DNA of 64,000 nt, taken from IMG/VR virus record IMGVR_UViG_3300024239_000011, positions 186,001 through 250,000 of that record; one strand, given 5' to 3'. Positions 24,339 to 44,798 of this stretch are shown piece by piece. Position numbers and translations under genes: made by a program. The stretch's first letter is position 1. Every line of letters begins with the position of its first letter. The notes under the pieces were generated by a model. That model worked only from the letters and a program-made list of their open reading frames with translations, did not search any database and was not told the origin of the DNA.

Positions 24339-24505
24339 TGTAGTTCTCCTTGTTTGACCAAAACCACAGACAAGTTTCTCGTCTTTATTTACAGGTCTGT
24401 GAATTTTACTTATCGAAAAGCCTCAAAAATTGGGATTTTTTAAAAATTGCCATTTTTCAATCATTTTTGGTAAAACCAAATAACCTTGAGTTGGACGAAA
24501 TACGC

Positions 24506-25327
24506 ATGAAAGACATCATTCTATTTGGCAATTGCCTGGAAACTTTGGATAGTTTCCCGAACAACACAGCTAGGTGTTGTATTACTAGTCCACCTTATTT
24601 TGGACTACGTGACTATGGGCATGAAGATCAAATCGGGAACGAACAAACCCCATCGGAATACATCACCAATTTGGTTAATGTATTTCGAAAGGTTCGTCGT
24701 GTTTTGACTGACGATGGGATTCTATGGGTGAATATCGGGGACAGTTATGCGGGGGCTGGATACAGCAATCACAAAAACACCGGAGGTGCCCAACGAAGTG
24801 ATGGAGGGAAACAACGGCACCTGATTGGTACCGGATGCAAAAATAAAGACTTGATTGGTATTCCGTGGATGTTGGCTTTTGCATTGCGCGAAGATGGTTG
24901 GTATCTTCGGCAAGACATTATTTGGCACAAACCAAATCCCATGCCGGAATCGGTCAAAGATCGATGCACCAAATCCCATGAATATTTGTTTCTATTGTCA
25001 AAATCTGAGAAATATTATTTCAACAGCGAAGCAATTCGAGAACCATGTGTTGGATCATCACAGCAGCGAAGTCGTAGATCGGTTTGGACAGTGCCAATTA
25101 AACCTTACAAAGGGGCGCACTTCGCAACTTTTCCCCAAAAACTGATAGAACCATGCGTATTGGTCGGTTCCGAACGTGGTGATATAATCCTTGATCCGTT
25201 TATGGGGTCTGGTACAACGGCAGAGGTCGCAATTATACACAATCGTCATTATATCGGTTGTGAGCTAAATGATGGCTATAAACCCCTACAAGACCAACGA
25301 ATCATGTATGCGAGACAAAAAGAATGA
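24506..25327 (+). CDS. DNA methyltransferase (N4-C/N6-A, beta class)
   Basis: TSPPY, IW.KPNPMPES..DR, HFATFP, LDPFMGSGTT. Confidence 0.93.
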   Translation: MKDIILFGNCLETLDSFPNNTARCCITSPPYFGLRDYGHEDQIGNEQTPSEYITNLVNVFRKVRRVLTDDGILWVNIGDSYAGAGYSNHKNTGGAQRSDGGKQRHLIGTGCKNKDLIGIPWMLAFALREDGWYLRQDIIWHKPNPMPESVKDRCTKSHEYLFLLSKSEKYYFNSEAIREPCVGSSQQRSRRSVWTVPIKPYKGAHFATFPQKLIEPCVLVGSERGDIILDPFMGSGTTAEVAIIHNRHYIGCELNDGYKPLQDQRIMYARQKE

Positions 25328-26178
25328 AGCCCTTATACAATGTGAATGGTTTAATGTTCTGGTCGGAGGAAGAGGTTCGCCTTCGGGAAACCATGCGTGA
25401 TACCTTTGCTCGTGGAATTCAAAACATCCTCCTGGCTGAAAACCCGGCATGGCAGTTTGTCTATTTCGAAGGTCCATTGTTAACCCCACGCTCGTTAATC
25501 AACCAGAACTACACCAATGATGATGTGTGGGTTCAAGAAGGTGAAGCCGACAAGCTGCGCTCTCAAATTGCGAAGCTGTATGCAGATGATTACCGCGACA
25601 GCGATTATCAGGACCGCAAGGAAGATCAGATCGCGGAACTGGAAGCAAAGCTTGCCCAGTACAGTGATCTTGTGCTGCGTCCGGAGACGACCCCGACTTC
25701 GTACACCTTCGCGCAACACCTCCTGAACAGCCATAGCGGTCACAAGCCGCCGATCTGCGTATGGCAGGCAGGTAAGAGCTTCCGCCGTGAAGCGGAACAG
25801 CCGACCAAGCACATGCGCTTGAAGGAATTCTACCAACAGGAATTCCAGTGTCTCTATACCGCTGACACCAAAAACGACTACCACACCGCCGTTCTGGAAC
25901 CGGTGCGCAAGATGATTGCCCAGGCAATCCCCTTCCCGACCCGTATTGTCGAAAGTGATCGTCTCCCGGCATACAGCCAGATCACCATGGATGTGGAAGT
26001 ATGGAATGAAGATAAGTGGATGGAGGTCTGCTCCATCAGTCGCCGTACCGATTTCCCAGACAAAGCCCGGTTCACAACCAAGAACGGTACCGTGGAAAAG
26101 GACATTTTGGTTTGTGAAATAGCCATTGGTCTAGACCGCTGTGTATACAACTACAATCAGTGGGCACAGAATGTCTAA
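25324..26178 (+). CDS. Class II aaRS catalytic-domain protein (GlyRS/ProRS-like, no anticodon domain)
   Basis: LRPET, WQAGKSFRRE, RLKEFYQQEFQ, MEVCSIS.RTDF, EIAIGLDR. Confidence 0.8.
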   Translation: MKPLYNVNGLMFWSEEEVRLRETMRDTFARGIQNILLAENPAWQFVYFEGPLLTPRSLINQNYTNDDVWVQEGEADKLRSQIAKLYADDYRDSDYQDRKEDQIAELEAKLAQYSDLVLRPETTPTSYTFAQHLLNSHSGHKPPICVWQAGKSFRREAEQPTKHMRLKEFYQQEFQCLYTADTKNDYHTAVLEPVRKMIAQAIPFPTRIVESDRLPAYSQITMDVEVWNEDKWMEVCSISRRTDFPDKARFTTKNGTVEKDILVCEIAIGLDRCVYNYNQWAQNV

Positions 26179-28242: not shown

Positions 28243-30018
28243 ATGCGAGAGCTTAATGTAGCTCTTGCCCAGTTGAACCCCAAGGTGGGTGACATCGCGG
28301 GCAATCTGAGCAAGATTCTGACCACCCGTCAGACCAATTCCAACGTCGATCTGATCGTCTTCAGCGAGTGCGTGTTGACCGGCTATCCGGTTGAAGACCT
28401 CGTGCAGCGCCCCGCCTTCATGAAGGCGGTCATGGCGGGCATCGAAGAACTGCGCGCCGCCATCGCGGGCACCGATGGTCCCGAGATCATCTTCGGCACT
28501 CCCTATCTCGAAGGCGGTAAGGTCTACAACGCCGCCATCTACGTCGCCCGGAACGGCAAGGTTCAGGTGCGCTTCAAGTCCGAGTTGCCGAACTACGATG
28601 TGTTCGATGAAGTGCGCAACTTCACCCGCGCCATCCCCGCCGACAACCAGACCTTCCGCATCGGTGATTATCATGTCGGCATGATGATTTGCGAAGATGG
28701 CTGGTACCCGCGCGTTTCCGAAGCCCTGTACAAGGGCGGTGCCGACATCATCTTCTGGATCAACGGCTCGCCGTTCTGCCAGGGCAAGGACCAGCTTCGC
28801 AAGGAAGTCATGGCGCAGCGCGCCAAGGAATGCCCCGGCACCCCGATCCTGTACGTCAATCAGGTCGGCGTTCAGGACGACATCGTGTTCGACGGCGCTG
28901 GTTTCGTTAGCGACCGTGAGGGCAACATCGTCGCCCAGCTTCCGGCGTTCGAGGAAAGCGTGACCGCGTTCAAGCTGGTCAATCACACCAAGAACACCGA
29001 AGTCAGCCTCGACCCGAACGCCCGTTCGCAGGCGTACCCGAGCGAGGACGAGGCGATCTACCGCGCCCTGATGCTGTCGCTGCGGGATTACGTGGAGAAG
29101 AACCGCTTCCCCTATGTGGTCCTGGGTCTGTCGGGTGGCATCGACTCCGGTCTGGTCGCCGCGCTCGCTGCCGATGCTCTCGGTCCCGACCGCGTGTGGG
29201 CAGTTCGCCTGCCGTCGCAGTGGACTTCCGACGAGTCCAACGATCTGGCAACCGAACAGTGCCGCCGCATGGGTATCCGTTGTGACACCATCGCTATCGC
29301 GGAAGCGGTTGCGGTGCTGGAAAACAACATCAACACCCTGGCGCTGTCCGATCTTCCGTTCCCGTCCCGTGACCCCAAGGGTCTGGCGGAAGAGAACGGT
29401 CAGTCCCGTGAACGCGGTCAGACCCTCATGTGGCTGTCCAACAAGTTCGGTCCCATGGTGGTGTCCACCGGCAACAAATCCGAGTACAGCACCGGCTATG
29501 CCACCCTGTATGGCGACATGTGCGGCGGTTACGCCTTGCTCAAGGATGTGTGGAAGCTAGACGTGTTCGCGGTCGCTAAGTGGCGCAACGAAAACCAGCC
29601 CATCGGCAGCCGTTTGCCCCGTGGTCCGAAGCAAACCCTGGAAGTTATCCCGGCGCGTGTGATCGAACGCCCGCCGACTGCCGAACTCAAGCCGGGTCAG
29701 TCGGACGAAGAATCGCTCATGCCCTATGACTTCCTCGACCCGCTGCTGATCGCCATGGTCGAAGACGAAAAGAGCAACGATGACACCGCCCTGATGCTGC
29801 TGGAACGCTTCGGCGCCGTTCGCAACTGGTGCGACGACGTGGACAAGATGCGGCGTCTGCTGGACCTTGCCGAGTACAAACGGCGGCAGGCAGCGCCGGG
29901 TCCGAAAATCACCCGCAAGTCCTACGGCAAGGGTCGTCGCTACCCGATCACCAATGGCTTCGTGGAAGTCTGTTCGGCGGATGTTCGGGCGCTGGTCGAA
30001 AGCAAGATGACCACCTGA
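28243..30018 (+). CDS. nadE: Glutamine-dependent NAD+ synthetase
   Basis: Nitrilase domain (ALAQLN..VGD, E..LTGY, K..LPNY.VFDE, ICED.W) plus synthetase (GLSGGIDS, STGNKSE...GYATLYGDM, PPTAEL, AEYKRRQA). Confidence 0.97.
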   Translation: MRELNVALAQLNPKVGDIAGNLSKILTTRQTNSNVDLIVFSECVLTGYPVEDLVQRPAFMKAVMAGIEELRAAIAGTDGPEIIFGTPYLEGGKVYNAAIYVARNGKVQVRFKSELPNYDVFDEVRNFTRAIPADNQTFRIGDYHVGMMICEDGWYPRVSEALYKGGADIIFWINGSPFCQGKDQLRKEVMAQRAKECPGTPILYVNQVGVQDDIVFDGAGFVSDREGNIVAQLPAFEESVTAFKLVNHTKNTEVSLDPNARSQAYPSEDEAIYRALMLSLRDYVEKNRFPYVVLGLSGGIDSGLVAALAADALGPDRVWAVRLPSQWTSDESNDLATEQCRRMGIRCDTIAIAEAVAVLENNINTLALSDLPFPSRDPKGLAEENGQSRERGQTLMWLSNKFGPMVVSTGNKSEYSTGYATLYGDMCGGYALLKDVWKLDVFAVAKWRNENQPIGSRLPRGPKQTLEVIPARVIERPPTAELKPGQSDEESLMPYDFLDPLLIAMVEDEKSNDDTALMLLERFGAVRNWCDDVDKMRRLLDLAEYKRRQAAPGPKITRKSYGKGRRYPITNGFVEVCSADVRALVESKMTT

Positions 30019-30027
30019 ACCAGAAAT

Positions 30028-30076
30028 CCATAGTGACCATCGTAAAGTTATAAATAAAGCGATGGTCACTATGGAG
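30028..30076 (+). promoter_or_regulatory. RBS-sequestering hairpin with late promoter in the loop
   Basis: TCCATAGTGACCATCG/CGATGGTCACTATGGA 16-bp perfect stem; loop contains TATAAATA; 3' arm overlaps GGAGG. Confidence 0.85.
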
Positions 30077-30082
30077 GGTTAG

Positions 30083-30937
30083 ATGAATAAATTCGCAGCT
30101 AAAACAAAAGCAATACCATACTCCGATACAGAGATAGAACGTCTTCGGGTGTTATGGGTTTCGGGTTCTATGGAAGAAATAAAAGAAGCATTTCCTAACC
30201 GCTCTTTGATTGGACTTGGACAGAAAGCTAAAAGTCTGGGTTTGGAATGTAAAGTTGAACGCGCCAGACGTGGTGATCTGTCCGTATTATTGGATAAATC
30301 ACTAACATCATTTTACTGGCTCGGTTTTATACTTGCCGATGGACATTTCACCAAAACAGGGCAATTAGTCGTTGCATTAATGGAAAAAGATAAAAATCAC
30401 CTTGAACATCTTGCTCAATACCTAAAAACAACAGTCAAATATCCATATAGGCGAGAAAAAGAATACAAAAAGAGGACATCATTAATTTCACCATCAGAAC
30501 AACAATTAAGATCAGTTGTTCGAATAACAGTACAAGACAAAGAAATAGTAGATCAGATCAATTTTTTATTAGGATTGCCATCTTCGAGAAAGACATACAA
30601 CCCTCCTACTAAGTTAGACGACTTGAATACAGACGAAATTACGGCTCTGTTTATAGGTTTCTTTGATGGGGATGGGTCATCAAGTTATAGTTCAATAGAG
30701 GGGTGTGTTCGGAAATCAGCAAGACTTGAAAATCATATTTCGTGGAAACCAGTTTTTGAAATCTTTAGAAATAACAATTTAATACACAACGCTATAACAC
30801 ACAAAAATAAGAATACCGTTTCCGGACATCCTACGAAAACTACTATGATGCGGTTATTAGCGTTCGCCACTGAGTATAAGTTACCAATTCTAATTCGGAA
30901 ATGGTCAATCTGGTTTGACGAAAGCAACTTAAACTGA
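30083..30937 (+). CDS. LAGLIDADG homing endonuclease
   Basis: YWLGFILADG and LFIGFFDGDG motifs; AT-rich island between GC-rich nadE and pncB. Confidence 0.9.
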   Translation: MNKFAAKTKAIPYSDTEIERLRVLWVSGSMEEIKEAFPNRSLIGLGQKAKSLGLECKVERARRGDLSVLLDKSLTSFYWLGFILADGHFTKTGQLVVALMEKDKNHLEHLAQYLKTTVKYPYRREKEYKKRTSLISPSEQQLRSVVRITVQDKEIVDQINFLLGLPSSRKTYNPPTKLDDLNTDEITALFIGFFDGDGSSSYSSIEGCVRKSARLENHISWKPVFEIFRNNNLIHNAITHKNKNTVSGHPTKTTMMRLLAFATEYKLPILIRKWSIWFDESNLN

Positions 30938-30966
30938 TATACTTTTGCTAATTGGAGGATCAACAC

Positions 30967-32397
30967 ATGACCAATTTTGCAGATCGTATTCTTCGTCCAG
31001 AAACGAACGATTATCCTGTTCGGAATTTGACAGATATCGATTTCTATAAATTTAGTATGGGGCAGTTCATTTTCCAAAACTACAAGGGCGTCCGCGTCCG
31101 CTTCGGTCTGATCAATCGCGAGCAGAAAATTCCGCTGGCGCGCATCGTGGATGAAGCGGAACTGCGCGCCGCGCTCGATCACATCTGCACGCTGAAGATT
31201 CGACGCACCGACCTGTCCACTCTGCGTGGTATGGACGTGTACGGGCAGAATATGTTCTCGAATGACTATCTGGCGTTCCTGGCTGATCTGCGCCTGCCGA
31301 CCTACGACCTGAAGCGAGTGGGCGATCAGTACGAACTTTTCTTCGAGTGCGAATGGGCGGAAGTCACGCTGTGGGAAACCATCGCGATGGCTGCCATCAT
31401 GGAATTGTACTATCGCGCTCTGATGCGGAAGCTGCCCAAGCGCGAACTCGAAAACATGTACGGCATGGCGGCGAACAAGCTGTACCGCAAGCTGCTGCGT
31501 ATCAAACAGCACGGCGGCATCCGCCTCGCTGATTTCGGTCAGCGTCGCCGTCACAGCTTCCTGTGGCAGCGTTACGCCATTGACATGGCGAAAGACGTGC
31601 TGGGTGAGCAGTTCACGGGTACCTCGAACACCTACATGGCGTTCGGCGCTGACTTGAATCCCATCGGTACCAACGCGAACAAACTGCCGATGGTGGTGAC
31701 CGCGCTCAAGATGATCGAGGCGCTGAAGGGCGGACTGTCCCGCGAAGACATCATCCCGCTGGTACGTGGCGCTCAATACACGGTGCTTGACCAGTGGGAG
31801 CAGATGTACGGTTCGGGTCTGCGGATCATCCTGCCCGATACCTACGGCAGCAAACAGTTCTTCGCCAACATGTCGGCTGATCAGGCGCGACGTATCGCCT
31901 TCGATTGGCGTGGCATCCGCCAGGACTCTGGCGACCCCGTGGCGGAATGCTGGATGTTCATCAACTGGCTGAAGTCGCAGGGCGTCGCCAATCCGAAGAA
32001 GGCGGGCAAGGTCTGCATTTTCTCGGACGGTCTGGACGTGAAGCTGGACGGTGCTTCGGGTGAACCCGATATCATCGAGCTTTACGAAACGTTCAAGGAC
32101 GAAATCAACACGCCGTTCGGCTGGGGTACCAACTTTACCAATGACTTCAAGGGCTGCCTGTCCTGTGCCGATGATCTGGTGCCGGGTCTGGAAGACTTGG
32201 GGCTGAAGTGGAAGGACGTGTTCAAGGGCTTCTCGCTGGTCTGTAAGGTCATCGCGGTCATCTATGACGGCATCAAGGTCGGTGCTGTGAAGCTGTCGAA
32301 CAACATTCTGAAGGCGACCGGCGCTAAGGAAGATGTGGCGGAATACATCCCCATCTACGGTGAAGACGGTCGCATTGAGCAGAAGGTCAACGTGTGA
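30967..32397 (+). CDS. pncB: Nicotinate phosphoribosyltransferase
   Basis: DIDFYKF.M.Q, TLWET, DFGQRRRHSFLWQ, GTSN, LPDTYG, R.DSGDP, IFSDGLD, FGWGTN.TND, VKLS. Confidence 0.93.
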   Translation: MTNFADRILRPETNDYPVRNLTDIDFYKFSMGQFIFQNYKGVRVRFGLINREQKIPLARIVDEAELRAALDHICTLKIRRTDLSTLRGMDVYGQNMFSNDYLAFLADLRLPTYDLKRVGDQYELFFECEWAEVTLWETIAMAAIMELYYRALMRKLPKRELENMYGMAANKLYRKLLRIKQHGGIRLADFGQRRRHSFLWQRYAIDMAKDVLGEQFTGTSNTYMAFGADLNPIGTNANKLPMVVTALKMIEALKGGLSREDIIPLVRGAQYTVLDQWEQMYGSGLRIILPDTYGSKQFFANMSADQARRIAFDWRGIRQDSGDPVAECWMFINWLKSQGVANPKKAGKVCIFSDGLDVKLDGASGEPDIIELYETFKDEINTPFGWGTNFTNDFKGCLSCADDLVPGLEDLGLKWKDVFKGFSLVCKVIAVIYDGIKVGAVKLSNNILKATGAKEDVAEYIPIYGEDGRIEQKVNV

Positions 32398-32528
32398 TGG
32401 ACGGCGAAGATTACCGTCTGGATCACTGGCTGGTGGAGCGGGGAGCAATCCCCGCTTTCGCCTCATCCTGCCCCTGCTGTAAGGCAAAAACACAACAGAA
32501 ACCCGGCTCGGAACCCGAGCAGAAAACA

Positions 32529-33473
32529 CTAAACAATAATACCCCTCTCTACTAAAATTTGGTAGAATTTGTGCTTGTGGGGATACAATATTCTTATTAA
32601 TTCTATACCATTATTAGCACAATACTTTGTTTTCACATCATCGCGGTATTGCGTATCACGTAAAGATTTTTCCCCTCCCCAATGACCGACAGGGCGGAAA
32701 TGTTGTGCTCCATCATACTCAATAACGGTATGAATACTTGGTAAATAAAAATCAAATCGTAACGGATATCCCGTTGATGGGTTTCGACAATCATCAAATG
32801 TTTTTTGAAAAACATACGCAATATTATTATCATCCAATATTCTCATAAGGCGAATTTCCGCCACAGAACTACTTTTACATTTAGGGCACCCATTCCCGTT
32901 TAAATGATGTCGTGGCGTTTGTTCAAAAATACCGTGATGCGGGCAGTCTATTTGCACCCTTGTATAATCATTTACGTATGACACATAGGAATAGTTGTAA
33001 AACTGCCCATGTATCACGTTGGCTCTTTTACCAAATATTTCAGCCGTTAAAGATTGTTTCTGCGCAGTTTTACGATCACCACATCGGGGACAACCATATC
33101 CATGTGAATGATTATCGGGTGATTGTTCGAAAACACCATGTAACGGGCATTTTATTTTTACTTTTGTGCGTGCATTCTTATACTCCACAAGGTCATATTG
33201 ATAAAACCCTTCATGAATGCTCGTAGATTTGTTGATAAACTCAATTGATTTCTTTTCTATATTTTTCCCTTTATTGCGCACACTACTAGCACAGCGAGGA
33301 CAACCTTGACCTTGTAGATGATTATCAGGTCTTTGAGTAAATTCGCCGTGTACCCGACATGTAATTACCACCGGGGTCTTATTGTTGATGTAGTTAGACT
33401 TATCATAGCTATATTTGCCGTCATGAACAGATAGTGCCAACCCAACAAACCATTCAGTATCCCGTTTTTGCAT
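32529..33473 (-). CDS. Free-standing homing-type endonuclease (Zn-finger repeats plus Vsr-like nuclease)
   Basis: Three H...Y.Y....Y....V.I.C..HG.F.Q.P..H..G.GCP.C repeats; LRFDFYLP...IEYDG.QH. Confidence 0.8.
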   Translation of the reverse strand: MQKRDTEWFVGLALSVHDGKYSYDKSNYINNKTPVVITCRVHGEFTQRPDNHLQGQGCPRCASSVRNKGKNIEKKSIEFINKSTSIHEGFYQYDLVEYKNARTKVKIKCPLHGVFEQSPDNHSHGYGCPRCGDRKTAQKQSLTAEIFGKRANVIHGQFYNYSYVSYVNDYTRVQIDCPHHGIFEQTPRHHLNGNGCPKCKSSSVAEIRLMRILDDNNIAYVFQKTFDDCRNPSTGYPLRFDFYLPSIHTVIEYDGAQHFRPVGHWGGEKSLRDTQYRDDVKTKYCANNGIELIRILYPHKHKFYQILVERGIIV

Positions 33474-33543
33474 AGTTGCCTCACAAACCATCATGTGCTA
33501 TTATTTAGCAAAATTAGCACATGACAGTTCAAAAGGTCGCCAC

Positions 33544-34884
33544 ATGTCTTCCCGCGCCAACACTGATTACACGTTTTTTTGGAAATCCGATTCGCCTTTC
33601 AGCAATTGGCATCCATCTGAATTTGTATTGCCATTCCCTTGGCATTTAATCGATCTCACACGGGGTAATGCGATTCACCGTCCAGCGGTGAAGGCACTAT
33701 TCTCCATGGGCATCACTTTTGATGATCTCAAGTTCAACTGTGTTGAAAAATATATGATGTTCGCCAAAAGTCTTCTCATGGGCGATTATATCACTGCTGC
33801 TAAAATTCTCAAAGAAACTCGCCCAAATGAATTAAAACGATTGGGGCGGGAAGTATCGCCGTGGAACGAAGAATTATGGATCGAACATCGTTTTAATATC
33901 GTGTTCGACGCATGTTGGGCGAAATTCACCCAGAATGAGCATCTACGTGATGAAATGCTTAGCACGGGAACTACAAAATTTGCGGAGGCGAGTCCCAAGG
34001 ATGCTATTTGGGGTCTTGGTATTTCCGTTGACGATCCACGCATTAATACGCCAGCCGTATGGACCGGTTTAAATCTTCTCGGGCAGGTTCTTGACAAGGT
34101 GAAAGCTCGCCTGCGCACCCAACCGGTGATCAAGCGCAAGATTCTGCCCTGGATGTCCGTCCAGAAGCGGGAACCGCGTGTCGCCCTAATGGTCGGACGG
34201 TTCCAGCCACTTCACCGTGCGCACTGCATGGTCATCGAGCGCATGCTTCAGGACAATGACGTGGTGATCATTGGTATCGGGTCGGCGCAGGAATCCAAAA
34301 CCCAACGCAACCCGTATCACGCCGAAATCCGCATGGCGATGCTGAAAAACGTTTTCGGCAACCGTATCGTGACCATGCCGTTGCGTGACTTGGGGTCGGG
34401 GGTTCACACCCAGGAATGGATTACCAACGTCATCGGTAAATGCCATGAAATGCGCCTACCGACGCCCAATCGCTACTACTGCGGATGCCATGACGATTCG
34501 CTCTGGTACCAGGGCTACTTCAGTGGCACCAACCCGAAGAAAATCGAGGTTGGTGACATGGTGAAATACGTCCACACCAGCGAAGACCGGGAACTGATCA
34601 TCCTCGAACGGACGATGAATCACTACCCGAGCGCCACGCGCATCCGTGAGTACATGAACCTGCGAATGGAAGACTGGAAGTGGTGGATTCCCGAGGTCAA
34701 CCACGTCCTAGTGGAAGCTAACTATCCAGCGCAGTTCCGCACCGCGCTGGAAGTCGAAGACTTCAGCGAGTTCACCGATATCCAACCGGAAGGTACGTTT
34801 GTGTACCAACCGACCAATGGCGAAATCTATCAAAAAATCAATGGTGTCTACCAGCCCAAGCGCGAATCGGTGGTCATCGAGTAG
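33544..34884 (+). CDS. NADAR domain fused to NadM-type NMN/NaMN adenylyltransferase
   Basis: FSNW, E.YMM..K, K.LGR.V, KF.QN..L...L.TG...EASP.D.IWG.G...G.NLLG (NADAR); GRFQPLH.AH...IGIGSAQ...RNP...R..M, SAT.IR (cytidylyltransferase-like). Confidence 0.88.
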   Translation: MSSRANTDYTFFWKSDSPFSNWHPSEFVLPFPWHLIDLTRGNAIHRPAVKALFSMGITFDDLKFNCVEKYMMFAKSLLMGDYITAAKILKETRPNELKRLGREVSPWNEELWIEHRFNIVFDACWAKFTQNEHLRDEMLSTGTTKFAEASPKDAIWGLGISVDDPRINTPAVWTGLNLLGQVLDKVKARLRTQPVIKRKILPWMSVQKREPRVALMVGRFQPLHRAHCMVIERMLQDNDVVIIGIGSAQESKTQRNPYHAEIRMAMLKNVFGNRIVTMPLRDLGSGVHTQEWITNVIGKCHEMRLPTPNRYYCGCHDDSLWYQGYFSGTNPKKIEVGDMVKYVHTSEDRELIILERTMNHYPSATRIREYMNLRMEDWKWWIPEVNHVLVEANYPAQFRTALEVEDFSEFTDIQPEGTFVYQPTNGEIYQKINGVYQPKRESVVIE

Positions 34885-34929: not shown

Positions 34930-35277
34930 ATGACACAAGTTGCTCTGTATCAAGGGTTCCCGGTTTCCAAGGATGGTTCTGTCGAGGGCGAACTTCCGCC
35001 AGATGTGAAATCGCGTTTTCCATCGGACCCTGATAATATCGACAATTACGATCTGGTACAGGCAGGTTACGAAGTCGTTATTCTATGTATTGATGAAGAC
35101 TCTGATTTCCCCATTGACGATGAGGAAGATCGGAATGAAGAAGGCGAAATTTATCTCGACGTAGCCCTTCAATGGTGCCCGGAACCTCCACCCGGTGAAG
35201 GTTGGAAATTGGCATGGAAAACCCCTCACGGGGATGATTGGAACGTCGTTTGGTGGAGAAAGAAAAATGACAGTTAA
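34930..35277 (+). CDS. Acidic hypothetical protein
   Basis: 115-aa ORF overlapping the next start. Confidence 0.55.
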   Translation: MTQVALYQGFPVSKDGSVEGELPPDVKSRFPSDPDNIDNYDLVQAGYEVVILCIDEDSDFPIDDEEDRNEEGEIYLDVALQWCPEPPPGEGWKLAWKTPHGDDWNVVWWRKKNDS

Positions 35278-36133
35278 AGATCGAGCAATAGGCTCATTTA
35301 TTGGTTTGGCTATTGGCGATGCCCTCGGCACCCCAGCAGAATTCAAGATGCCCGGCGAATTCGAACCCATCACTGGAATGCGCGGTGGTGGGGCTTTTCG
35401 TTTGAACCCTGGCGAATGGACCGACGATACCAGTATGGCGTTGTGTATTGCGTATTCACTGTCCGACAAAGGTGATTTTGTCCCGTCTGATATCATGAAA
35501 CGGTTTGTGAACTGGTGGCAGCACGGCTACGCTTCCCACAACGGGCGCTGCTTTGATATTGGTACCACCACCCGCAAAGCCCTTCAGCGGTTCATAAAGA
35601 CCGGTGAAACGTCAATGCCGGATACAGACCCGATGGCGTCTGGAAACGGCGCCATCATGCGATTCTCACCCATCGCCACGTTCTATCACGACAACATCGA
35701 CCGCATGGTTGAGGTGGCAATTTCCCAGGCAATGATGACCCATCCAACCCCCGAGTCTATTCGGGAGGCGGAAACCTTTGCCCGCATCATTCACGGGGCA
35801 ATGCACGGCAAGACGAAGGAAGAACTTATCGACTGCGAGAAATTCAAGAAAATCCCGGCTGATATGGTCCCGGCAACTGGTTACGTTGTGCATACGATGT
35901 TTGCTGCACAATGGGCAGTTGCCAATTCGGATAATTTCTGCGATGCTCTACTCAAGGCAGTAAACCTAGGGGATGATGCTGATACCGTTGGTGCGGTTAC
36001 CGGTCAAATTGCCGGTGCATTGTACGGCGTCTCTACAATCCCCAACGAATGGCTGTCGGTGCTTGCATGGCGCGAACAATTGTTCGATCTGGCGGAAAAA
36101 CTATACTCAGGTCAACCCAACAACGACATGTGA
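35267..36133 (+). CDS. ADP-ribosylglycohydrolase (DraG/ARH family)
   Basis: GLAIGDALG...EF, GEWTDDT, FDIG, SGNGAIMR, VNLGDDADT.GA. Confidence 0.95.
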   Translation: MTVKDRAIGSFIGLAIGDALGTPAEFKMPGEFEPITGMRGGGAFRLNPGEWTDDTSMALCIAYSLSDKGDFVPSDIMKRFVNWWQHGYASHNGRCFDIGTTTRKALQRFIKTGETSMPDTDPMASGNGAIMRFSPIATFYHDNIDRMVEVAISQAMMTHPTPESIREAETFARIIHGAMHGKTKEELIDCEKFKKIPADMVPATGYVVHTMFAAQWAVANSDNFCDALLKAVNLGDDADTVGAVTGQIAGALYGVSTIPNEWLSVLAWREQLFDLAEKLYSGQPNNDM

Positions 36134-36455: not shown

Positions 36456-36569
36456 CCACTTGCCCAACAATTGAAGGAGACGGTTCATCCTCGTTCCGTC
36501 GGGTTTGATGTTGTTAGAGCAACATCAAACCCCGCTTGTATATTTATCTCGAACGAAAGGGGGCGCGTT

Positions 36570-37086
36570 ATGGCACGGATTGCCGTTTACGCGGGAAGTT
36601 TTCGACCCGATTACCTATGGTCATTTCGACATGATCGAGCGTGCGTTGCCGCTGTTCGACCGGCTGCATGTCACAATTGCGGTCAATCCCGATAAGGATA
36701 GCGGGCTACTCTCGCTCACGGAACGTCGCGAACTGATCGAAGCATGGCTCGCCACCAAAGACTTCAAGGACAAAGTGGTGGTGGTCGATGCGGTCAAGGG
36801 AATGTTGGTAAAGCATTGCCGCCATATTGGCGCCCATTTCATCGTGCGCGGATTGCGTGCGGTATCGGACTTCGATTATGAATTTCAGGTCTACGGCATC
36901 AACCGTGATCAGGCACCAGACATCCAAACCATCTGGTTCCCTGCGTCGCCCGAATTCATGTTCGTGTCCTCGAAAACGGTCAAGGGCATCTTTAAGAGCG
37001 GTGCCGACATCAGCAAGTACGTTCCGCCCCTCGTGGAACAGAAAATGCGCGAGCGCATTCAACAGACTACCTACGAGGTGGTATAA
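36570..37086 (+). CDS. coaD: Phosphopantetheine adenylyltransferase, split by a +1 frame change at ~36600
   Basis: MARIAVYAGSF (frame 0) joins FDPITYGH (frame +1); IVRGLRAVSDFDYE, FVSS..VK. Confidence 0.88.
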
Positions 37087-37098
37087 GGACTACGGATT

Positions 37099-37887
37099 AT
37101 GCTGGACAATCTTCTCTACCAAGAAAAGCTTCTGAGCCTTGAAGAGGAACAGGCGCTTACCAACCGTATGAATGACAAGAAGGCGTTCGACACGCTGATA
37201 TTGGCACATGCGCCCTTGGTCGGGAAGATTGCGCGTAATTTCAAGGGCTATAATCTGCCCATGGACGACCTCATTTCCTGCGGGTTCACTGGACTTGTTT
37301 ACGCTGCCCATCGGTTCGATCCGACCCGTGGCGCTCGGTTCGCAACCTATGTAGAAGACCGCATTCGTTACGAAATTGCCGAATACGTTCTTAAAAACCT
37401 GCGACTGATGCGAGTGGATGTATCAGGTGCGCATCGGAAGTGCTTCTACGCAATTTCCCGTATGCGTCGAAAACATAACATACTTCGTTTCACCGAAGAA
37501 AATGCCGGTCCCGCAGCCGAGGAACTTGGGGTGGAACCCCGTATCCTTGTGGATATGGAGGATCGACTTCAGGCGGTTACTTCACTTGACACCCCTGTGA
37601 AAGATGGTAGTTCCACCACCCTAGCCGACCTTCTGGTAGACGGTTCGACCATGACGACCGTGGAAGACAATCTTGCTGAACGCCAGGAATACAACCAACA
37701 GTGGTGCTGGGTTCAAGAAGCCATCACTACGCTGAATGACCGAGAACAAGACATCATCCGTCAACGCAAATTGATGGATGAACCGCCTACCTTAAATGAA
37801 TTGGCGGTGAAGTATAACGTTTCGTCGCAGCGTATCCGCCAACTCGAAACACGTGCGATGGAAAAAATCATCAGCTATTGCATTTAA
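37099..37887 (+). CDS. RpoH-like sigma-70 family factor
   Basis: LV.KIA..F.GY.LP..DLI..G..GL..A..RFDP.RG.RFATY; LNDREQDII..R...P.TL.ELA..Y.VS.QRIRQLE.RA. Confidence 0.9.
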   Translation: MLDNLLYQEKLLSLEEEQALTNRMNDKKAFDTLILAHAPLVGKIARNFKGYNLPMDDLISCGFTGLVYAAHRFDPTRGARFATYVEDRIRYEIAEYVLKNLRLMRVDVSGAHRKCFYAISRMRRKHNILRFTEENAGPAAEELGVEPRILVDMEDRLQAVTSLDTPVKDGSSTTLADLLVDGSTMTTVEDNLAERQEYNQQWCWVQEAITTLNDREQDIIRQRKLMDEPPTLNELAVKYNVSSQRIRQLETRAMEKIISYCI

Positions 37888-37897
37888 AGGTGTTCCA

Positions 37898-38953
37898 ATG
37901 AGAATTCTCCTAGTACGGCATGGTGAATCCGCTGCCAACGCCAACAAAGACCTCCACGCCAGCATGGCGGATCACGACATCCCGCTATCCGAGCGTGGTT
38001 TGTTGCAGGCGACCGAAGCAGGTAAATTCCTAAACGCATTCTTGAACGAACGTTTGCGTGCTGAAAAAGATATGGGAACGTTTGCGTTAGAAGCATTTGG
38101 GATGAAATCGCCTCTTGGTGATGGGCTTAAATTACCCAAAGTCCGGCTATGGAATAGTCCCTATCGGCGTACACGACAAACGGCGAAGAATATCCTCGCT
38201 CAAATTACACCGAGCGAATTCAACATCGATCAACGTGAAAACAGCCGTTTATGCGAGCAGCAATTTGGGTTGTTCGATGGTATTCCCGATGATGAACGTC
38301 ATCTCCATTTCCCGGACGAAGCCGCACACTATAAAAAGTGTGAGGACCACGGCGGGCATTATTGGGCACGTATGCCGTTGGGCGAGAGCCGGTTCGACGT
38401 GGGCAACCGCGTATATCAATTCTTTGGTAGCGTCCACCGCGATAGCGAAAAACACGGCATCGACACGATCATCGTGATCTGTCACGGCATCACCTTGCGG
38501 GTATTTGTTCAGGAATGGCTCCATTTGTCCCCGGAATGGGTCAATGCCGAACCGAACCCAGATAATTGTTGGGTCCGCTATCTCAGCCAGGGAGAGGATG
38601 ACACTCATGGGCGTCCCGGTAATTGGATCGACCATGGCTATATTTTCACTGGGGAAGGACAGTCCGGTCTTTGGCCAAAACAACGAGCGCCACGCCACGG
38701 ACATCCATGCACGGGCGAATGCAATGGCGCTGCCACTTGGTCATCCAATGGCTGCGGTGCCTGTGGGATCACCGAACACGAGAACGAAACCTGGGAACAG
38801 ATGTCTACCCAGGAACGGTCCCGTATTTTCGCGGACATCACCCTTCGTGATATTACCCCGGCATTGAAAGCGTGTGGGACGTGTCGGTTCCAAGAGGGGT
38901 GTAGCAAGCCGGAAAAACGGGACAATTACTGCAACGAATGGGCAGCATCATGA
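37898..38953 (+). CDS. Histidine phosphatase with Cys-rich C-terminal extension
   Basis: LVRHGES, SPY.RT.QT, L.EQ.FG, GES, CHG. Confidence 0.9.
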   Translation: MRILLVRHGESAANANKDLHASMADHDIPLSERGLLQATEAGKFLNAFLNERLRAEKDMGTFALEAFGMKSPLGDGLKLPKVRLWNSPYRRTRQTAKNILAQITPSEFNIDQRENSRLCEQQFGLFDGIPDDERHLHFPDEAAHYKKCEDHGGHYWARMPLGESRFDVGNRVYQFFGSVHRDSEKHGIDTIIVICHGITLRVFVQEWLHLSPEWVNAEPNPDNCWVRYLSQGEDDTHGRPGNWIDHGYIFTGEGQSGLWPKQRAPRHGHPCTGECNGAATWSSNGCGACGITEHENETWEQMSTQERSRIFADITLRDITPALKACGTCRFQEGCSKPEKRDNYCNEWAAS

Positions 38954-39176
38954 CCGAGAAACCGTTCGTCAGCAGATGTTGTGAGGGCGAGGAATGTTCT
39001 TGCGGTGCGCCTGCTGAACATAAAGTCGAAGAAGTCATCTTCTACGACGACCCGCACCAGCAACGTCACCCGTTCACCGCATACGTTTGCCACAAATGTT
39101 TCGTCCACATCATGGGCAACGCGGCAAAACGTCCCGAAGAGCTATAAACGGAAAGGGCGGCAATTTGCCGCCCTTT

Positions 39177-39449
39177 TCATTTTCCGTCCGGTGGCGTGTC
39201 GTACACGATCAGGATTGTTTCAGCCAGATTGGTCAACGCCTTAAGCGTACTGGTTTCAAACGCGGTGCCTTGGTGAGTCAATGCCAGCGTTGCAACCATT
39301 TTTAGCACACCGATCACTTCCGGGGAATAATTGAACGGCGGTTTGGCGTAATGGTTGGCATTACCAATCAGTTGCTCGATCAGCGGAATGACCTCTGCGT
39401 TGGGTTGCTCCAACGCAGACAGAAAATCAAAACATGAATCAGACAGCAT
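39177..39449 (-). CDS. Hypothetical protein
   Basis: 90-aa ORF ending at the hairpin 39151-39178. Confidence 0.45.
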   Translation of the reverse strand: MLSDSCFDFLSALEQPNAEVIPLIEQLIGNANHYAKPPFNYSPEVIGVLKMVATLALTHQGTAFETSTLKALTNLAETILIVYDTPPDGK

Positions 39450-39484: not shown

Positions 39485-40027
39485 TCAGGCAGCTTCCTTT
39501 AACAGCAGAGCATACACCTTGGCAATCTCTTCCTCAGTATGGGCAACGCCGCCCGCATTAAGATCGATGTACCACTGAAGCACTTCCTTGCGGGTCTTCA
39601 GATTGTTGATATGGACGGTGAAGGCGCAATCGTGCGGCAGCTTGTCCGCATACTCGCCATACAGCCGACCGAACGCCGGGATTTCGTTCGCCAGGAACCG
39701 GCGAACTGCCTGAAGGCGCTGTTTACCATCAACCAGCACCAATTCGCCCCGGAAATCGTCGTTCCAGCGGGGATGATTGAAGTACAGGTCGCGGCTGGAC
39801 TGCCCGCCGCGCAGGATAAATTCAACATAGCGAATCTGCTGCTTCTCGTTCCACACATGGGCGCGTTGGAAATCAGGGTCGAGGACGAGAACCTGCTGAC
39901 AACCCGGATCGTCCTGATCCGCCAGCCACCCTTCCAGATAGCGCCACGACTGCTCGCACTTGTACGCGGCAGACCGGGTGAACTGCGGGATGTCACGGAA
40001 CCTGTTGAACGGACCCAAGGCAGTCAT
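39485..40027 (-). CDS. DUF262 (GmrS/ParB-like) protein
   Basis: PDFQR.HVW...Q...YVE, VDGKQRL, LN.GG. Confidence 0.85.
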   Translation of the reverse strand: MTALGPFNRFRDIPQFTRSAAYKCEQSWRYLEGWLADQDDPGCQQVLVLDPDFQRAHVWNEKQQIRYVEFILRGGQSSRDLYFNHPRWNDDFRGELVLVDGKQRLQAVRRFLANEIPAFGRLYGEYADKLPHDCAFTVHINNLKTRKEVLQWYIDLNAGGVAHTEEEIAKVYALLLKEAA

Positions 40028-41183: not shown

Positions 41184-42161
41184 ATGAAACTGAACACCCG
41201 CATCGCGCCGTCTCCGACTGGTTTCATGCACATCGGGACTGCCCGCACTGCTTACTTTAATTTTTTGGCTGCTAAAGCCAGCGGCGGCACTTTCTATCTG
41301 CGCATTGACGATACCGATACTGACCGTGAGGTTGAAGGTGCAGTGGACGTGATCCTGAACAGCTTGTCATGGTTGGGGTTGGATTACGATTCAGAGGTAA
41401 TCTACCAGTCGCAGCGGAAAGATGTTTATCGTCAATGGGCGCGATGGTTGATTTCTATCGGCGCTGCCAAGGAACTCGACAATGGCGCGATTGCCCTGGT
41501 ATGGCAGGATTACATGCCGCGCGTGTGGCATGACGACATCGCGGGCGAAATGGCAATTTCCGACAAGGAAGCCGAACAAATCGACGGGCTGATCCTGATG
41601 AAGGGTGGCGACAAGCTTGGTCAGCCGATCTACCACTTCGCATCCGTGGTCGATGACTGGAACCGAATCAACTGCATCATTCGCGGCACCGATCACATCT
41701 CGAACACTGGCAAGCAGCTTGCCATCTGGGCAGCTATGAACCGGTTCTGTGAGATTCAGAACGAGCGAAAGACGGAACTTGACCCGGTTCATGGTCACTT
41801 CCAAACGCCGCCCGAGTTCCCGCGCATTGCCCATGTGGGTTTGATCCACAAGAACAAGAAGAAAATGTCGAAACGGGACGCGGTGACCGACCCGACGATC
41901 TTCATGGCGTACTATCAGGAAAACAACTATGAACCGGAAGCAGTTCTGAATTTTCTATTGCGTATGGGATGGGGTCCGACTGTGGATGACAAATCCACTA
42001 CTACTCTCCCACGTGAACGTGCAGTGGAACTGTTCCTCGAAGGCGGTAAGATGCGGTCGGCACCCGCAAACTTCGATATGGCGAAATTGGAATCGTTTAA
42101 TCGCAAGTATAAAGGTATGCGCGAGAATGCCCTGAAAGCGACAGTCAATGCAGTGGCTTAA
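41184..42161 (+). CDS. GluRS/Glu-Q-RS-like class I aaRS catalytic domain
   Basis: TRIAPSPTG.MHIG.ARTA, LRIDDTD, Y.FASVVDD, IRG.DH, KMSKR, LLRMGW; no anticodon-binding domain. Confidence 0.88.
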   Translation: MKLNTRIAPSPTGFMHIGTARTAYFNFLAAKASGGTFYLRIDDTDTDREVEGAVDVILNSLSWLGLDYDSEVIYQSQRKDVYRQWARWLISIGAAKELDNGAIALVWQDYMPRVWHDDIAGEMAISDKEAEQIDGLILMKGGDKLGQPIYHFASVVDDWNRINCIIRGTDHISNTGKQLAIWAAMNRFCEIQNERKTELDPVHGHFQTPPEFPRIAHVGLIHKNKKKMSKRDAVTDPTIFMAYYQENNYEPEAVLNFLLRMGWGPTVDDKSTTTLPRERAVELFLEGGKMRSAPANFDMAKLESFNRKYKGMRENALKATVNAVA

Positions 42162-44249: not shown

Positions 44250-44798
44250 ATGGAAGACGATCTCGTAAAACACAGCAAATTCATGAGCCTCATCTTGCGG
44301 CATAAACCCGAGAAAGTAGGTCTTACCCTCGGGGATGGCGGTTGGGTCAATACGTTTGACCTCATCAAGGCGATGAATGACCACAATTACCCGATCACTC
44401 TCGACACCCTCATTACAGTCGTTGAAGACAACGACAAGAAGCGTTTCTCCTTCAACCATGACAGGTCGATGATACGGGCTGCCCAAGGGCATTCGGTTGA
44501 TGTGAAGCTGGACTATCGCCCGAAACGCCCGCCTGATCGACTGCATCACGGTACCGTCTACGCCTTCCTGAAGTCGATCAAGCAGACCGGCTTGGACAAG
44601 GGCAAGCGCCATGCAGTGCATCTGAGCGAGGATTATGCGACGGCGGTCAAGGTTGGATCGCGCCGTGGTGATCCGGTCATCCTGATCATCAAAGCCAAGG
44701 AAATGCACGAGGACGGCTATTCGTTCTTCCAGAGCGACAATGGCGTTTGGCTGACCGACTTCGTGTTACCGAAGTACATCATCTTCCCCAATGACTGA
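44250..44798 (+). CDS. kptA: NAD+-dependent RNA 2'-phosphotransferase (Tpt1/KptA)
   Basis: SK.MS.ILRH.P, K.RF, IRA.QGHS, HGT, R..VHLS, S.NGVWL. Confidence 0.95.
   Translation: MEDDLVKHSKFMSLILRHKPEKVGLTLGDGGWVNTFDLIKAMNDHNYPITLDTLITVVEDNDKKRFSFNHDRSMIRAAQGHSVDVKLDYRPKRPPDRLHHGTVYAFLKSIKQTGLDKGKRHAVHLSEDYATAVKVGSRRGDPVILIIKAKEMHEDGYSFFQSDNGVWLTDFVLPKYIIFPND

Follow-up and report, generated by a model that had tools for sequence, protein, structure and literature searches.

A gene cluster of a very large T4-like phage very probably encodes the three enzymes needed to make NAD+ from nicotinate, the phosphoribosyltransferase PncB, a NadM-type NMNAT and the synthetase NadE, with the NMNAT fused to a NADAR domain. 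The cluster lies in a 64,000-nucleotide stretch of DNA (hereafter the window) that corresponds to bases 186001-250000 of the 543,035-bp IMG/VR virus record IMGVR_UViG_3300024239_000011. We assign the element to the very large T4-like phages, because genes for a T4-type major capsid protein (Gp23) and an S77 prohead protease adjoin the cluster on its 5' side, on the opposite strand. In the proposed Preiss-Handler route, PncB would join nicotinate and 5-phosphoribosyl 1-pyrophosphate (PRPP) in an ATP-driven reaction to form nicotinate mononucleotide (NaMN). The NadM-type domain of the fusion would adenylate NaMN to nicotinate adenine dinucleotide (NaAD), which the two-domain NadE would finally amidate with glutamine to NAD+. 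This succession had been proposed in a sequence-only reading of the window, and homology, catalytic motifs and a fold model agree with it. We infer which substrate each enzyme uses, in what order the final two reactions run, and that the genes are expressed. On balance, we favor a Preiss-Handler module that includes a role in NAD+ maintenance; a specific function against NADases, suggested by the genomic context, is more tentative.

Genes were taken from a listing of open reading frames (ORFs), and families were assigned by Pfam, NCBIfam and PHROGs scans (Table 1). Coordinates, order and families confirmed that nadE, pncB and the NadM-type gene are consecutive save for two endonuclease genes and one tiny ORF, as first described. 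The 543-kb record contains one gene of the NAPRTase family, one of the NadE family and two of the CTP_transf_like family, both of the latter in this region. By our own arithmetic, the chance of finding three such genes within 6.6 kb of 543 kb is about 1e-4 to 1e-3. Chance adjacency is therefore unlikely, as each of the three functions is single-copy in the record, and conserved synteny settles the matter: the same gene order is retained in relatives that are just 35%-66% identical.

The nadE product is a credible glutamine-dependent two-domain (type F) NAD+ synthetase. It scores 620.5 bits against the NAD+ synthase model NF010588 (cut-off 479) and combines PF00795 with PF02540, that is, a nitrilase-like glutaminase fused to a synthetase. 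The closest among solved structures is the Acinetobacter baumannii glutamine-dependent NAD+ synthetase (Gln-NADS, 5kha), matched over the full length with an E-value of 3e-117. In the alignment against 5kha, the Glu/Lys/Cys triad of the glutaminase is kept (FSEC, ELPNY and MICED), and the LSGGIDS loop is present. The nearest named cellular relatives belong to Rhodospirillales (about 50%), and the GC content of nadE is 61% vs 49% for the window.

PncB contains PF17767 (52 bits) and PF04095 (92 bits), and aligns end to end with the Agrobacterium tumefaciens NAPRTase 1ybe (residues 20-480 against 25-440, E 6e-87). It is a divergent member of the family carrying several insertions. The FG.RRRHSFLWQ block is conserved: four phage PncBs share FGQRRRHSFLWQ without change, and 1ybe has FGTRRRHSFLWQ at the corresponding position. 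The His of this block we take to be the counterpart of the phosphorylated His of the Salmonella enzyme, in keeping with the ATP-coupled phosphohistidine class. All solved relatives found for PncB are NAPRTases and none is a NAMPT; a weak PHROG match to the NAMPT family was also recorded (E 4e-8). PncB is predicted to use nicotinate rather than nicotinamide. Its true start is probably ATG 30967, the codon used by gene callers in other assemblies.

The third enzyme forms the C-terminal half of a fusion protein, in which the NADAR domain spans residues 28-208 (about 33574-34116), the NMNAT domain spans residues about 229-415 (about 34177-34737), and a 45-aa tail follows. Gene calls elsewhere place the start at either ATG 33493 (463 aa) or ATG 33541 (446-447 aa). 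The sequence-only reading had correctly recognized an adenylyltransferase of the NadM type, but took it for a plain enzyme, missing the N-terminal NADAR domain as well as the Tri1-like ADP-ribosyl hydrolase (ARH) and the CoaD nearby. The C-terminal domain is a credible NadM/archaeal-type adenylyltransferase of nicotinamide mononucleotide (NMN) or NaMN. It displays the motifs GRFQPLHRAH and PSATRIR, of the HxAH and SxTxxR types, and in our reading R236, H241, H244 and R385 of the fusion align with R11, H16, H19 and R136 of 1ej2. Sequence searches match just the first 60-70 residues of this domain, and it aligns end to end with the 180-205-aa NMNATs of phage PncB clusters. An AlphaFold model of the fusion (pLDDT 80.8) was compared using Foldseek, giving TM-scores of 0.74-0.79 against the whole archaeal NMNAT chains 1hyb, 1ej2 and 1f9a, and 0.69 against the NADAR protein 8bau. 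The domain would be expected to accept NaMN, given its linkage to PncB and NadE, the lack of an NMN source in the 543-kb record and a cellular precedent (PMC3376133).

The NADAR domain is assigned at 150.5 bits vs 35.1 for PF08719. Aligned by eye with 8bau, it keeps the catalytic Glu and Lys (E85 and K92) and the Glu of the last strand (E165), the latter marking the YbiA type. The pyrophosphate-binding K..GR site is also retained in our reading of the alignment against published work (PMC11543638, PMC11125620). Its predicted reaction is removal of ADP-ribose, either from DNA guanine or from small derivatives of ADP-ribose. Pfam detected no Nudix domain in the fusion; bacterial NadM carries one at its C-terminus. 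In the NMNAT subfamily of the fusion, the usual upstream partner is a Nudix protein, encoded either by an adjacent gene or as an N-terminal fusion, the latter seen in two relatives (P0261 and P0280). NADAR therefore occupies the Nudix slot. Two further NADAR-NMNAT proteins came out of a word-indexed search covering 5.8 billion proteins, which makes three sequences in total; when 1.84 billion representatives were searched exhaustively with phmmer, only one 50%-identity cluster matched across both domains, and the fusion occurs in no deposited phage. A tie between NADAR and NAD salvage recurs outside the lineage of the window, as Synechococcus phage B3 (42316-45491) has a NADAR gene, annotated as hypothetical, between a NadM-type NMNAT and NAMPT in a NARP2-like cluster. 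Separately, a 285-aa protein among the NADAR matches (P0300) joins NADAR to the tRNA-binding domain PF01588, which fits the link to RNA repair proposed for some NADARs. The second CTP_transf_like gene was considered as a spare NMNAT and rejected, for it is a CoaD by TIGR01510 and its FDPITYGH motif; its position, flanked by the NAD genes and the sigma factor gene, is variable in content, and there the relative L009 has an unrelated 194-aa gene.

Related clusters were found in metagenomic contigs and deposited phages. A 37-kb ENA contig (L009) contains genes for NadE (64% identical), PncB and the NADAR-NMNAT fusion (53%), together with an HNH gene, a small ORF and genes for a sigma factor and the same histidine phosphatase. 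A 9.6-kb contig (L054) encodes NadE (66%), PncB (66%-70%) and a stand-alone NMNAT (53%) without NADAR, and its three genes abut or overlap. We further surveyed co-occurrence across phages, as the sequence-only reading had proposed. Scanning IMG/VR with a single PncB sequence yielded no confirmed locus; the scan with a PncB alignment returned 37, of which 32 are distinct. NadE lay no more than 10 kb from PncB at 26 of these 32, a phage NMNAT at 16, a PncA-like isochorismatase at 16 and Nudix at 12. Where the flanks were sufficient, NadE and NMNAT occurred together in 12 of 23 loci, ten of which also contain PncA. The closest solved structures to the PncA-like protein of these relatives are the nicotinamidases 1ilw and 3pl1. 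In Sinorhizobium phage Phosso, the genes for NadE, PncB, Nudix, NMNAT and PncA are all clustered; in Agrobacterium phage Atu_ph07, genes that resemble PncA, NMNAT and Nudix but lack annotation stand next to PncB, and NadE is encoded at a separate site. Across these loci, the nicotinate branch thus recurs as a giant-phage module kept together by selection, in which parts are swapped and the pathway is retained.

One such swap concerns PncB itself. In a maximum-likelihood tree, PncB of the window groups with that of L054 and a few metagenomic sequences in a clade that includes named bacterial PncBs, and PncB of L009 falls in the clade of Atu_ph07-type jumbo phages; the two clades have 100/99 support. 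Despite these differing PncB clades, NadE and the fusion are 64% and 53% identical, respectively, between the window phage and L009. By phylogeny, PncB has been swapped between lineages while the pathway was retained, and in the window its gene is bracketed by the two homing-endonuclease genes. These genes, earlier described as inserted, are indeed insertions, because the genes of L054 abut without them; their GC content is 36%-38% vs 51%-61% for the neighboring genes. The LAGLIDADG gene is also missing from L009, where, as in L054, nadE and pncB neighbor each other. The HNH gene has paralogs elsewhere in the record, and a 45%-identical copy in L009 stands on the other side of pncB. The 52-aa ORF, which runs at its 3' end into the end of the HNH gene, was called as a gene in three assemblies. 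L009 has an 82-aa ORF in the corresponding position, but the two resemble each other in the first six residues only; as a remnant of the N-terminal extension of the L009 fusion the 52-aa ORF was rejected, showing no similarity. Long antisense ORFs over nadE and pncB were also rejected as genes, as they match no family and are artifacts of GC-rich coding.

The extent of the genome bears on what may be absent from it. The IMG/VR record, with 48.7% GC and 66 tRNA genes, nearly all at 77-172 kb on a single strand, is rated 100% complete by CheckV. An 869,618-bp ENA MEGAHIT contig (k141_178484 of ERZ27245855), 99.99% identical to window 20967-42000 (21 kb), extends beyond position 1 of the record; an independent assembly concurs, and further contigs extend beyond its far end. 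The record covers only part of a genome whose size is at least 870 kb. Provided that the 869,618-bp contig is not chimeric, this genome is larger than those of 735 kb and 716 kb, which have been cited as the largest (PMC11662467). The public sequencing runs holding the sequence are subsurface and soil metagenomes, and none of 50,697 deposited phages matched the 7.9-kb region by megablast. All genome-level absences reported here refer to the 543 kb searched of at least 870 kb, about 326 kb lying outside the search; they are therefore provisional.

The module sits in a small island of NAD+/ADP-ribose conflict, in which the NADAR fusion is followed by a Tri1-like ARH. This ARH matches the Tri1 model NF041672 (E 1.9e-89, below cut-off), and its best solved relative is Serratia Tri1 (6dre, E 1.9e-74). 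It is predicted to remove ADP-ribose from proteins, and it is not found at this position in L009. In a T4-like relative whose PncB is 58% identical (L067:1862-9401), NadE and PncB are separated by a true Acb1 anti-CBASS gene (110.6 bits), with a Macro-domain gene 3 kb upstream. Other phage proteins acting on NAD+ or ADP-ribose are a Tpt1/KptA, a SIR2-family protein encoded in the tRNA region and a Macro-domain protein; an NAD-dependent ligase adenylation domain and a PF03496 ADP-ribosyltransferase were both absent from the 543 kb.

Together with a host nicotinamidase, the route would recycle nicotinamide freed by NADase defenses, and the module would most likely sustain NAD+ in the infected cell against two drains, NAD+-depleting host immunity and the NAD+-using enzymes of the phage itself. 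A counter-defense reading is suggested because NAD+ reconstitution is proven to be useful, most related clusters contain a nicotinamidase, and the gene company is of a fitting kind. Taken furthest, this reading would make the cluster the fourth pathway of NAD+ reconstitution, a deamidated one that overcomes NADase defenses by way of what the host nicotinamidase produces. In this fullest form, NADAR-NMNAT would be a two-in-one counter-defense enzyme whose NADAR domain strips from phage DNA the ADP-ribose left by a DarT1-type attack or destroys ADP-ribose-derived products while the NMNAT domain rebuilds NAD+, and NADAR would have displaced Nudix. We regard this fullest form as doubtful.

Several observations weigh against the module and its proposed role. 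Neither pncA nor a prs or Adps-like gene was found in the window or the 543-kb record; the sequence-only reading had already noted that pncA and a PRPP synthetase gene are missing from the window, and the search it called for extends this to the record. NAMPT/Namat-like genes, NadR and PnuC were likewise absent from the record; this leaves the 543 kb with no other NAD route, a point in favor of the Preiss-Handler reading. As that reading had anticipated, a nicotinamidase and PRPP are needed from outside: without pncA and prs, nicotinate and PRPP must come from the host, and without pncA the encoded route cannot take up nicotinamide, the actual product of NADases. Within 543 kb the pathway is thus not self-contained, starting neither from NADase products nor from a precursor brought in by a transporter of its own, and most related clusters, unlike the window, carry their own pncA. 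A hidden nicotinamidase was sought in the 292-aa ORF upstream of nadE, and nothing was found by Pfam, PHROGs, NCBIfam or a protein atlas (best 0.60). Two of the enzymes fall below curated NCBIfam cut-offs, namely PncB (NF003704, 302.3 vs 379, E 5e-90; TIGR01514, 171.8 vs 269.55) and the NMNAT domain (NF002243, 66.9 vs 127; TIGR01527, 59 vs 181.2). The Preiss-Handler route is also costly, with three ATP-consuming steps in addition to PRPP and glutamine. Public RNA runs contain just 5%-9% of the sampled words, which bears on expression, and in the literature we found no experiment on a deamidated phage route against a NADase defense. Finally, Tpt1 and SIR2 are NAD+ consumers of the phage itself and are possibly the whole reason for the module.

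This last point leads to the alternative that the module is a housekeeping booster, supplying NAD+ for the phage's own NAD+-using enzymes and for replication on a very large scale in subsurface hosts that grow slowly, with no specific link to NADase immunity. Besides the Tpt1/KptA and SIR2-family genes of the record, the subsurface or soil origin of the metagenomes and the absence of pncA, by which nicotinamide from NADases is not a direct input, are in its favor; in a 2024 survey, too, such phages are seen as restoring NAD+ that they consume themselves (PMC11662467). However, the nicotinamidase of most related clusters points to nicotinamide recycling, and the adjoining genes belong to ADP-ribose reversal and anti-CBASS functions, not to metabolism. 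We consider the booster alone rather unlikely, and it and the counter-defense reading are not mutually exclusive.

A different order of the last steps, known from Francisella, appears improbable. In this order NadE would amidate NaMN to NMN, and the NadM-type domain would then adenylate NMN, making acceptance of NaMN needless; it also ends in NAD+. The NMN synthetase of Francisella is a single-domain NadE. NadM enzymes do use NMN well, and the swap from NadD to NadM in Francisella accompanies an NMN-synthetase NadE (PMC3376133). By contrast, NadE of the window is of the two-domain glutamine type and closest to the Acinetobacter enzyme, a conventional NAD+ synthetase that works alongside NadM, and NadE of M. 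jannaschii showed no NMN-synthetase activity (PMC3376133). Very improbable is a mainly non-biosynthetic fusion, in which the NMNAT-like domain would serve NADAR, for example by binding or re-using ADP-ribose-type nucleotides, and NAD+ synthesis would be incomplete: the rarity of the fusion, the sub-threshold scores of its NMNAT domain and the NADAR gene within the NAMPT-NMNAT cluster of cyanophage B3, which points to some functional tie between NADAR and NMNAT, speak for it, but all NMNAT catalytic motifs are retained, the closest relative, L054, has the same NMNAT standing alone directly after NadE and PncB, and the fusion is the only adenylyltransferase of the record able to close the pathway, because the other one is CoaD.

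The Preiss-Handler module can be placed among known systems. NAD+ reconstitution pathways NARP1 and NARP2 were demonstrated by Osterman et al., whose preprint is silent on the nicotinate branch, and NARP3, composed of PnuC and NadR, has been shown experimentally (PMC13464706). The sequence-only reading had presented the deamidated route as an undescribed third chemistry. This does not hold, since pncB-nadD-nadE clusters sufficient for the Preiss-Handler route were reported in some jumbo phages in 2024, by annotation only (PMC11662467, Microbiome 2024), NARP3 has been described as well, and the cluster is widespread in IMG/VR and present in Phosso and Atu_ph07, mostly with its own PncA. With more than 200 kb and a full Preiss-Handler gene set, the window phage falls within the published definition of a NAD-jumbo phage (PMC11662467). 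As in those phages (e.g., Kuafu_71), PncB, a mononucleotide adenylyltransferase and NadE are encoded side by side, and both cases are known only from sequence; however, theirs is a nadD, whereas the window has a NadM/archaeal-type domain fused to NADAR, two homing-endonuclease genes and adjoining ADP-ribosyl hydrolases (PMC11662467). A 2022 survey (Iyer et al.) lists only NadV, NadM and NadR and states that every phage with NadM has NadV; by their gene content, the locus of the window and the Atu_ph07-type cluster are apparent exceptions to this generalization.

Phosso, Atu_ph07 and IMG/VR relatives of about 450-490 kb share with the window the same NMNAT subfamily (34%-41% identity) linked to PncB and NadE in the same order. 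They differ in having their own nicotinamidase and a Nudix just upstream of NMNAT, where the window has NADAR and no PncA within 543 kb. In addition, NadE of Phosso is of the single-domain NH3 type, unlike the two-domain enzyme of the window, and PncB of the window belongs to another clade. NARP2 and the NadV-NatV pair of KVP40 similarly use a PRPP-dependent pyridine phosphoribosyltransferase and a NadM-type adenylyltransferase (NMNAT/Nudix) to rebuild NAD+; NARP2, however, is amidated, takes nicotinamide directly, needs no NadE and experimentally counters NADase defenses, whereas the window lacks NAMPT. NARP1 (Adps and Namat) and NARP3 have the same goal of restoring NAD+ during infection, but start from ADP-ribose plus nicotinamide and from imported nicotinamide riboside, respectively, and with enzymes different from those of the window. 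Among cellular systems, the NAD network of Acinetobacter similarly runs from PncB through a bifunctional NadM that acts on NaMN to a glutamine-type NAD+ synthetase (PMC3376133), yet its genes are dispersed and include PncA, and its NadM has a C-terminal Nudix instead of an N-terminal NADAR. The NADAR domain itself shares the PF08719 fold, the active-site Glu and Lys and the ADP-ribose phosphate site with known NADAR hydrolases (YbiA, DarT1-associated proteins and phage gp30.3), which stand alone or are fused to Macro, SLOG or DUF4326 rather than to NMNAT. New here are the rare NADAR-NMNAT fusion in the Nudix slot, the absence of pncA in 543 kb and the swap of PncB.

Downstream of the NAD genes, a pair encoding a sigma-70 factor and a histidine phosphatase with DUF1289 is conserved in L009 (L009:5910-7606; 46% and 57% identity, respectively). 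The extended-NARP1 paper's methods screen the operons of NARP1 for proteins with a Macro domain; an assignment of the histidine phosphatase as the ADP-ribose-1''-phosphate phosphatase of extended NARP1 was not supported, as its matches are weak and of the CobC/PGM type. The strongest terminator-like hairpin is likely the end of a co-directional gene block starting near 24350, and directly beyond it lies an ORF with a GmrSD_N domain. Two truncated-looking aminoacyl-tRNA-synthetase-like genes flank the region.

Table 1. Features of the NAD+ locus and of other NAD+/ADP-ribose genes of the phage; positions are those of the window unless marked G000.
Feature	Position	Strand	Details
Aminoacyl-tRNA-synthetase-like gene, truncated-looking	25324-26178		class II core, 284 aa
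nadE	28243-30018	+	591 aa; CN_hydrolase + NAD_synthase
LAGLIDADG homing-endonuclease gene, free-standing	30083-30937	+	LAGLIDADG_3 PF14528; phrog_4645 endonuclease; GC 36.5%
pncB	30967-32397 (ORF opens TTG 30952)	+	NAPRTase_N + NAPRTase; 476 aa from ATG 30967
52-aa ORF	32397-32555	+	no family match
HNH/DUF723-type homing-endonuclease gene	32529-33494	-	phrog_559 HNH endonuclease, E 1.9e-76; PF05265; GC 38%
NADAR-NMNAT fusion	33493-34884	+	463 aa; PF08719 + PF01467
115-aa ORF	34930-35277	+	no family match; called in other assemblies; absent from L009
Tri1/DraG-like ADP-ribosyl(arginine) glycohydrolase (predicted)	35234-36133	+	PF03747, 236 bits
coaD, phosphopantetheine adenylyltransferase	36508-37086	+	TIGR01510, 145 bits vs cut-off 103.3
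Sigma-70-family factor	37099-37887	+	5' member of downstream pair
Histidine phosphatase with C-terminal DUF1289	37853-38953	+	3' member of downstream pair
Strongest terminator-like hairpin	39150-39178	+	13 pairs; consensus scan only
GmrSD_N (DUF262-type) ORF	39485-40027	-	180 aa
Aminoacyl-tRNA-synthetase-like gene, truncated-looking	41184-42161		Glu/Gln-type catalytic domain, 325 aa
Tpt1/KptA RNA 2'-phosphotransferase	44250-44798	+	PF01885, 166.7 bits
SIR2-family protein	G000 149376-149897		163.6 bits
Macro-domain protein	G000 479418-479786

In summary, rebuilding of NAD+ is a proven phage counter to Thoeris, DSR, SIR2-HerA and similar defenses, and the three routes shown so far all avoid the deamidated branch. 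The locus is a good candidate for a bench test of a possible fourth. A dependence on host PncA, if true, would be exploitable by the host. The NADAR fusion would physically couple NAD+ resynthesis to ADP-ribose removal, and is a concrete lead on the cellular role of phage NADAR proteins.

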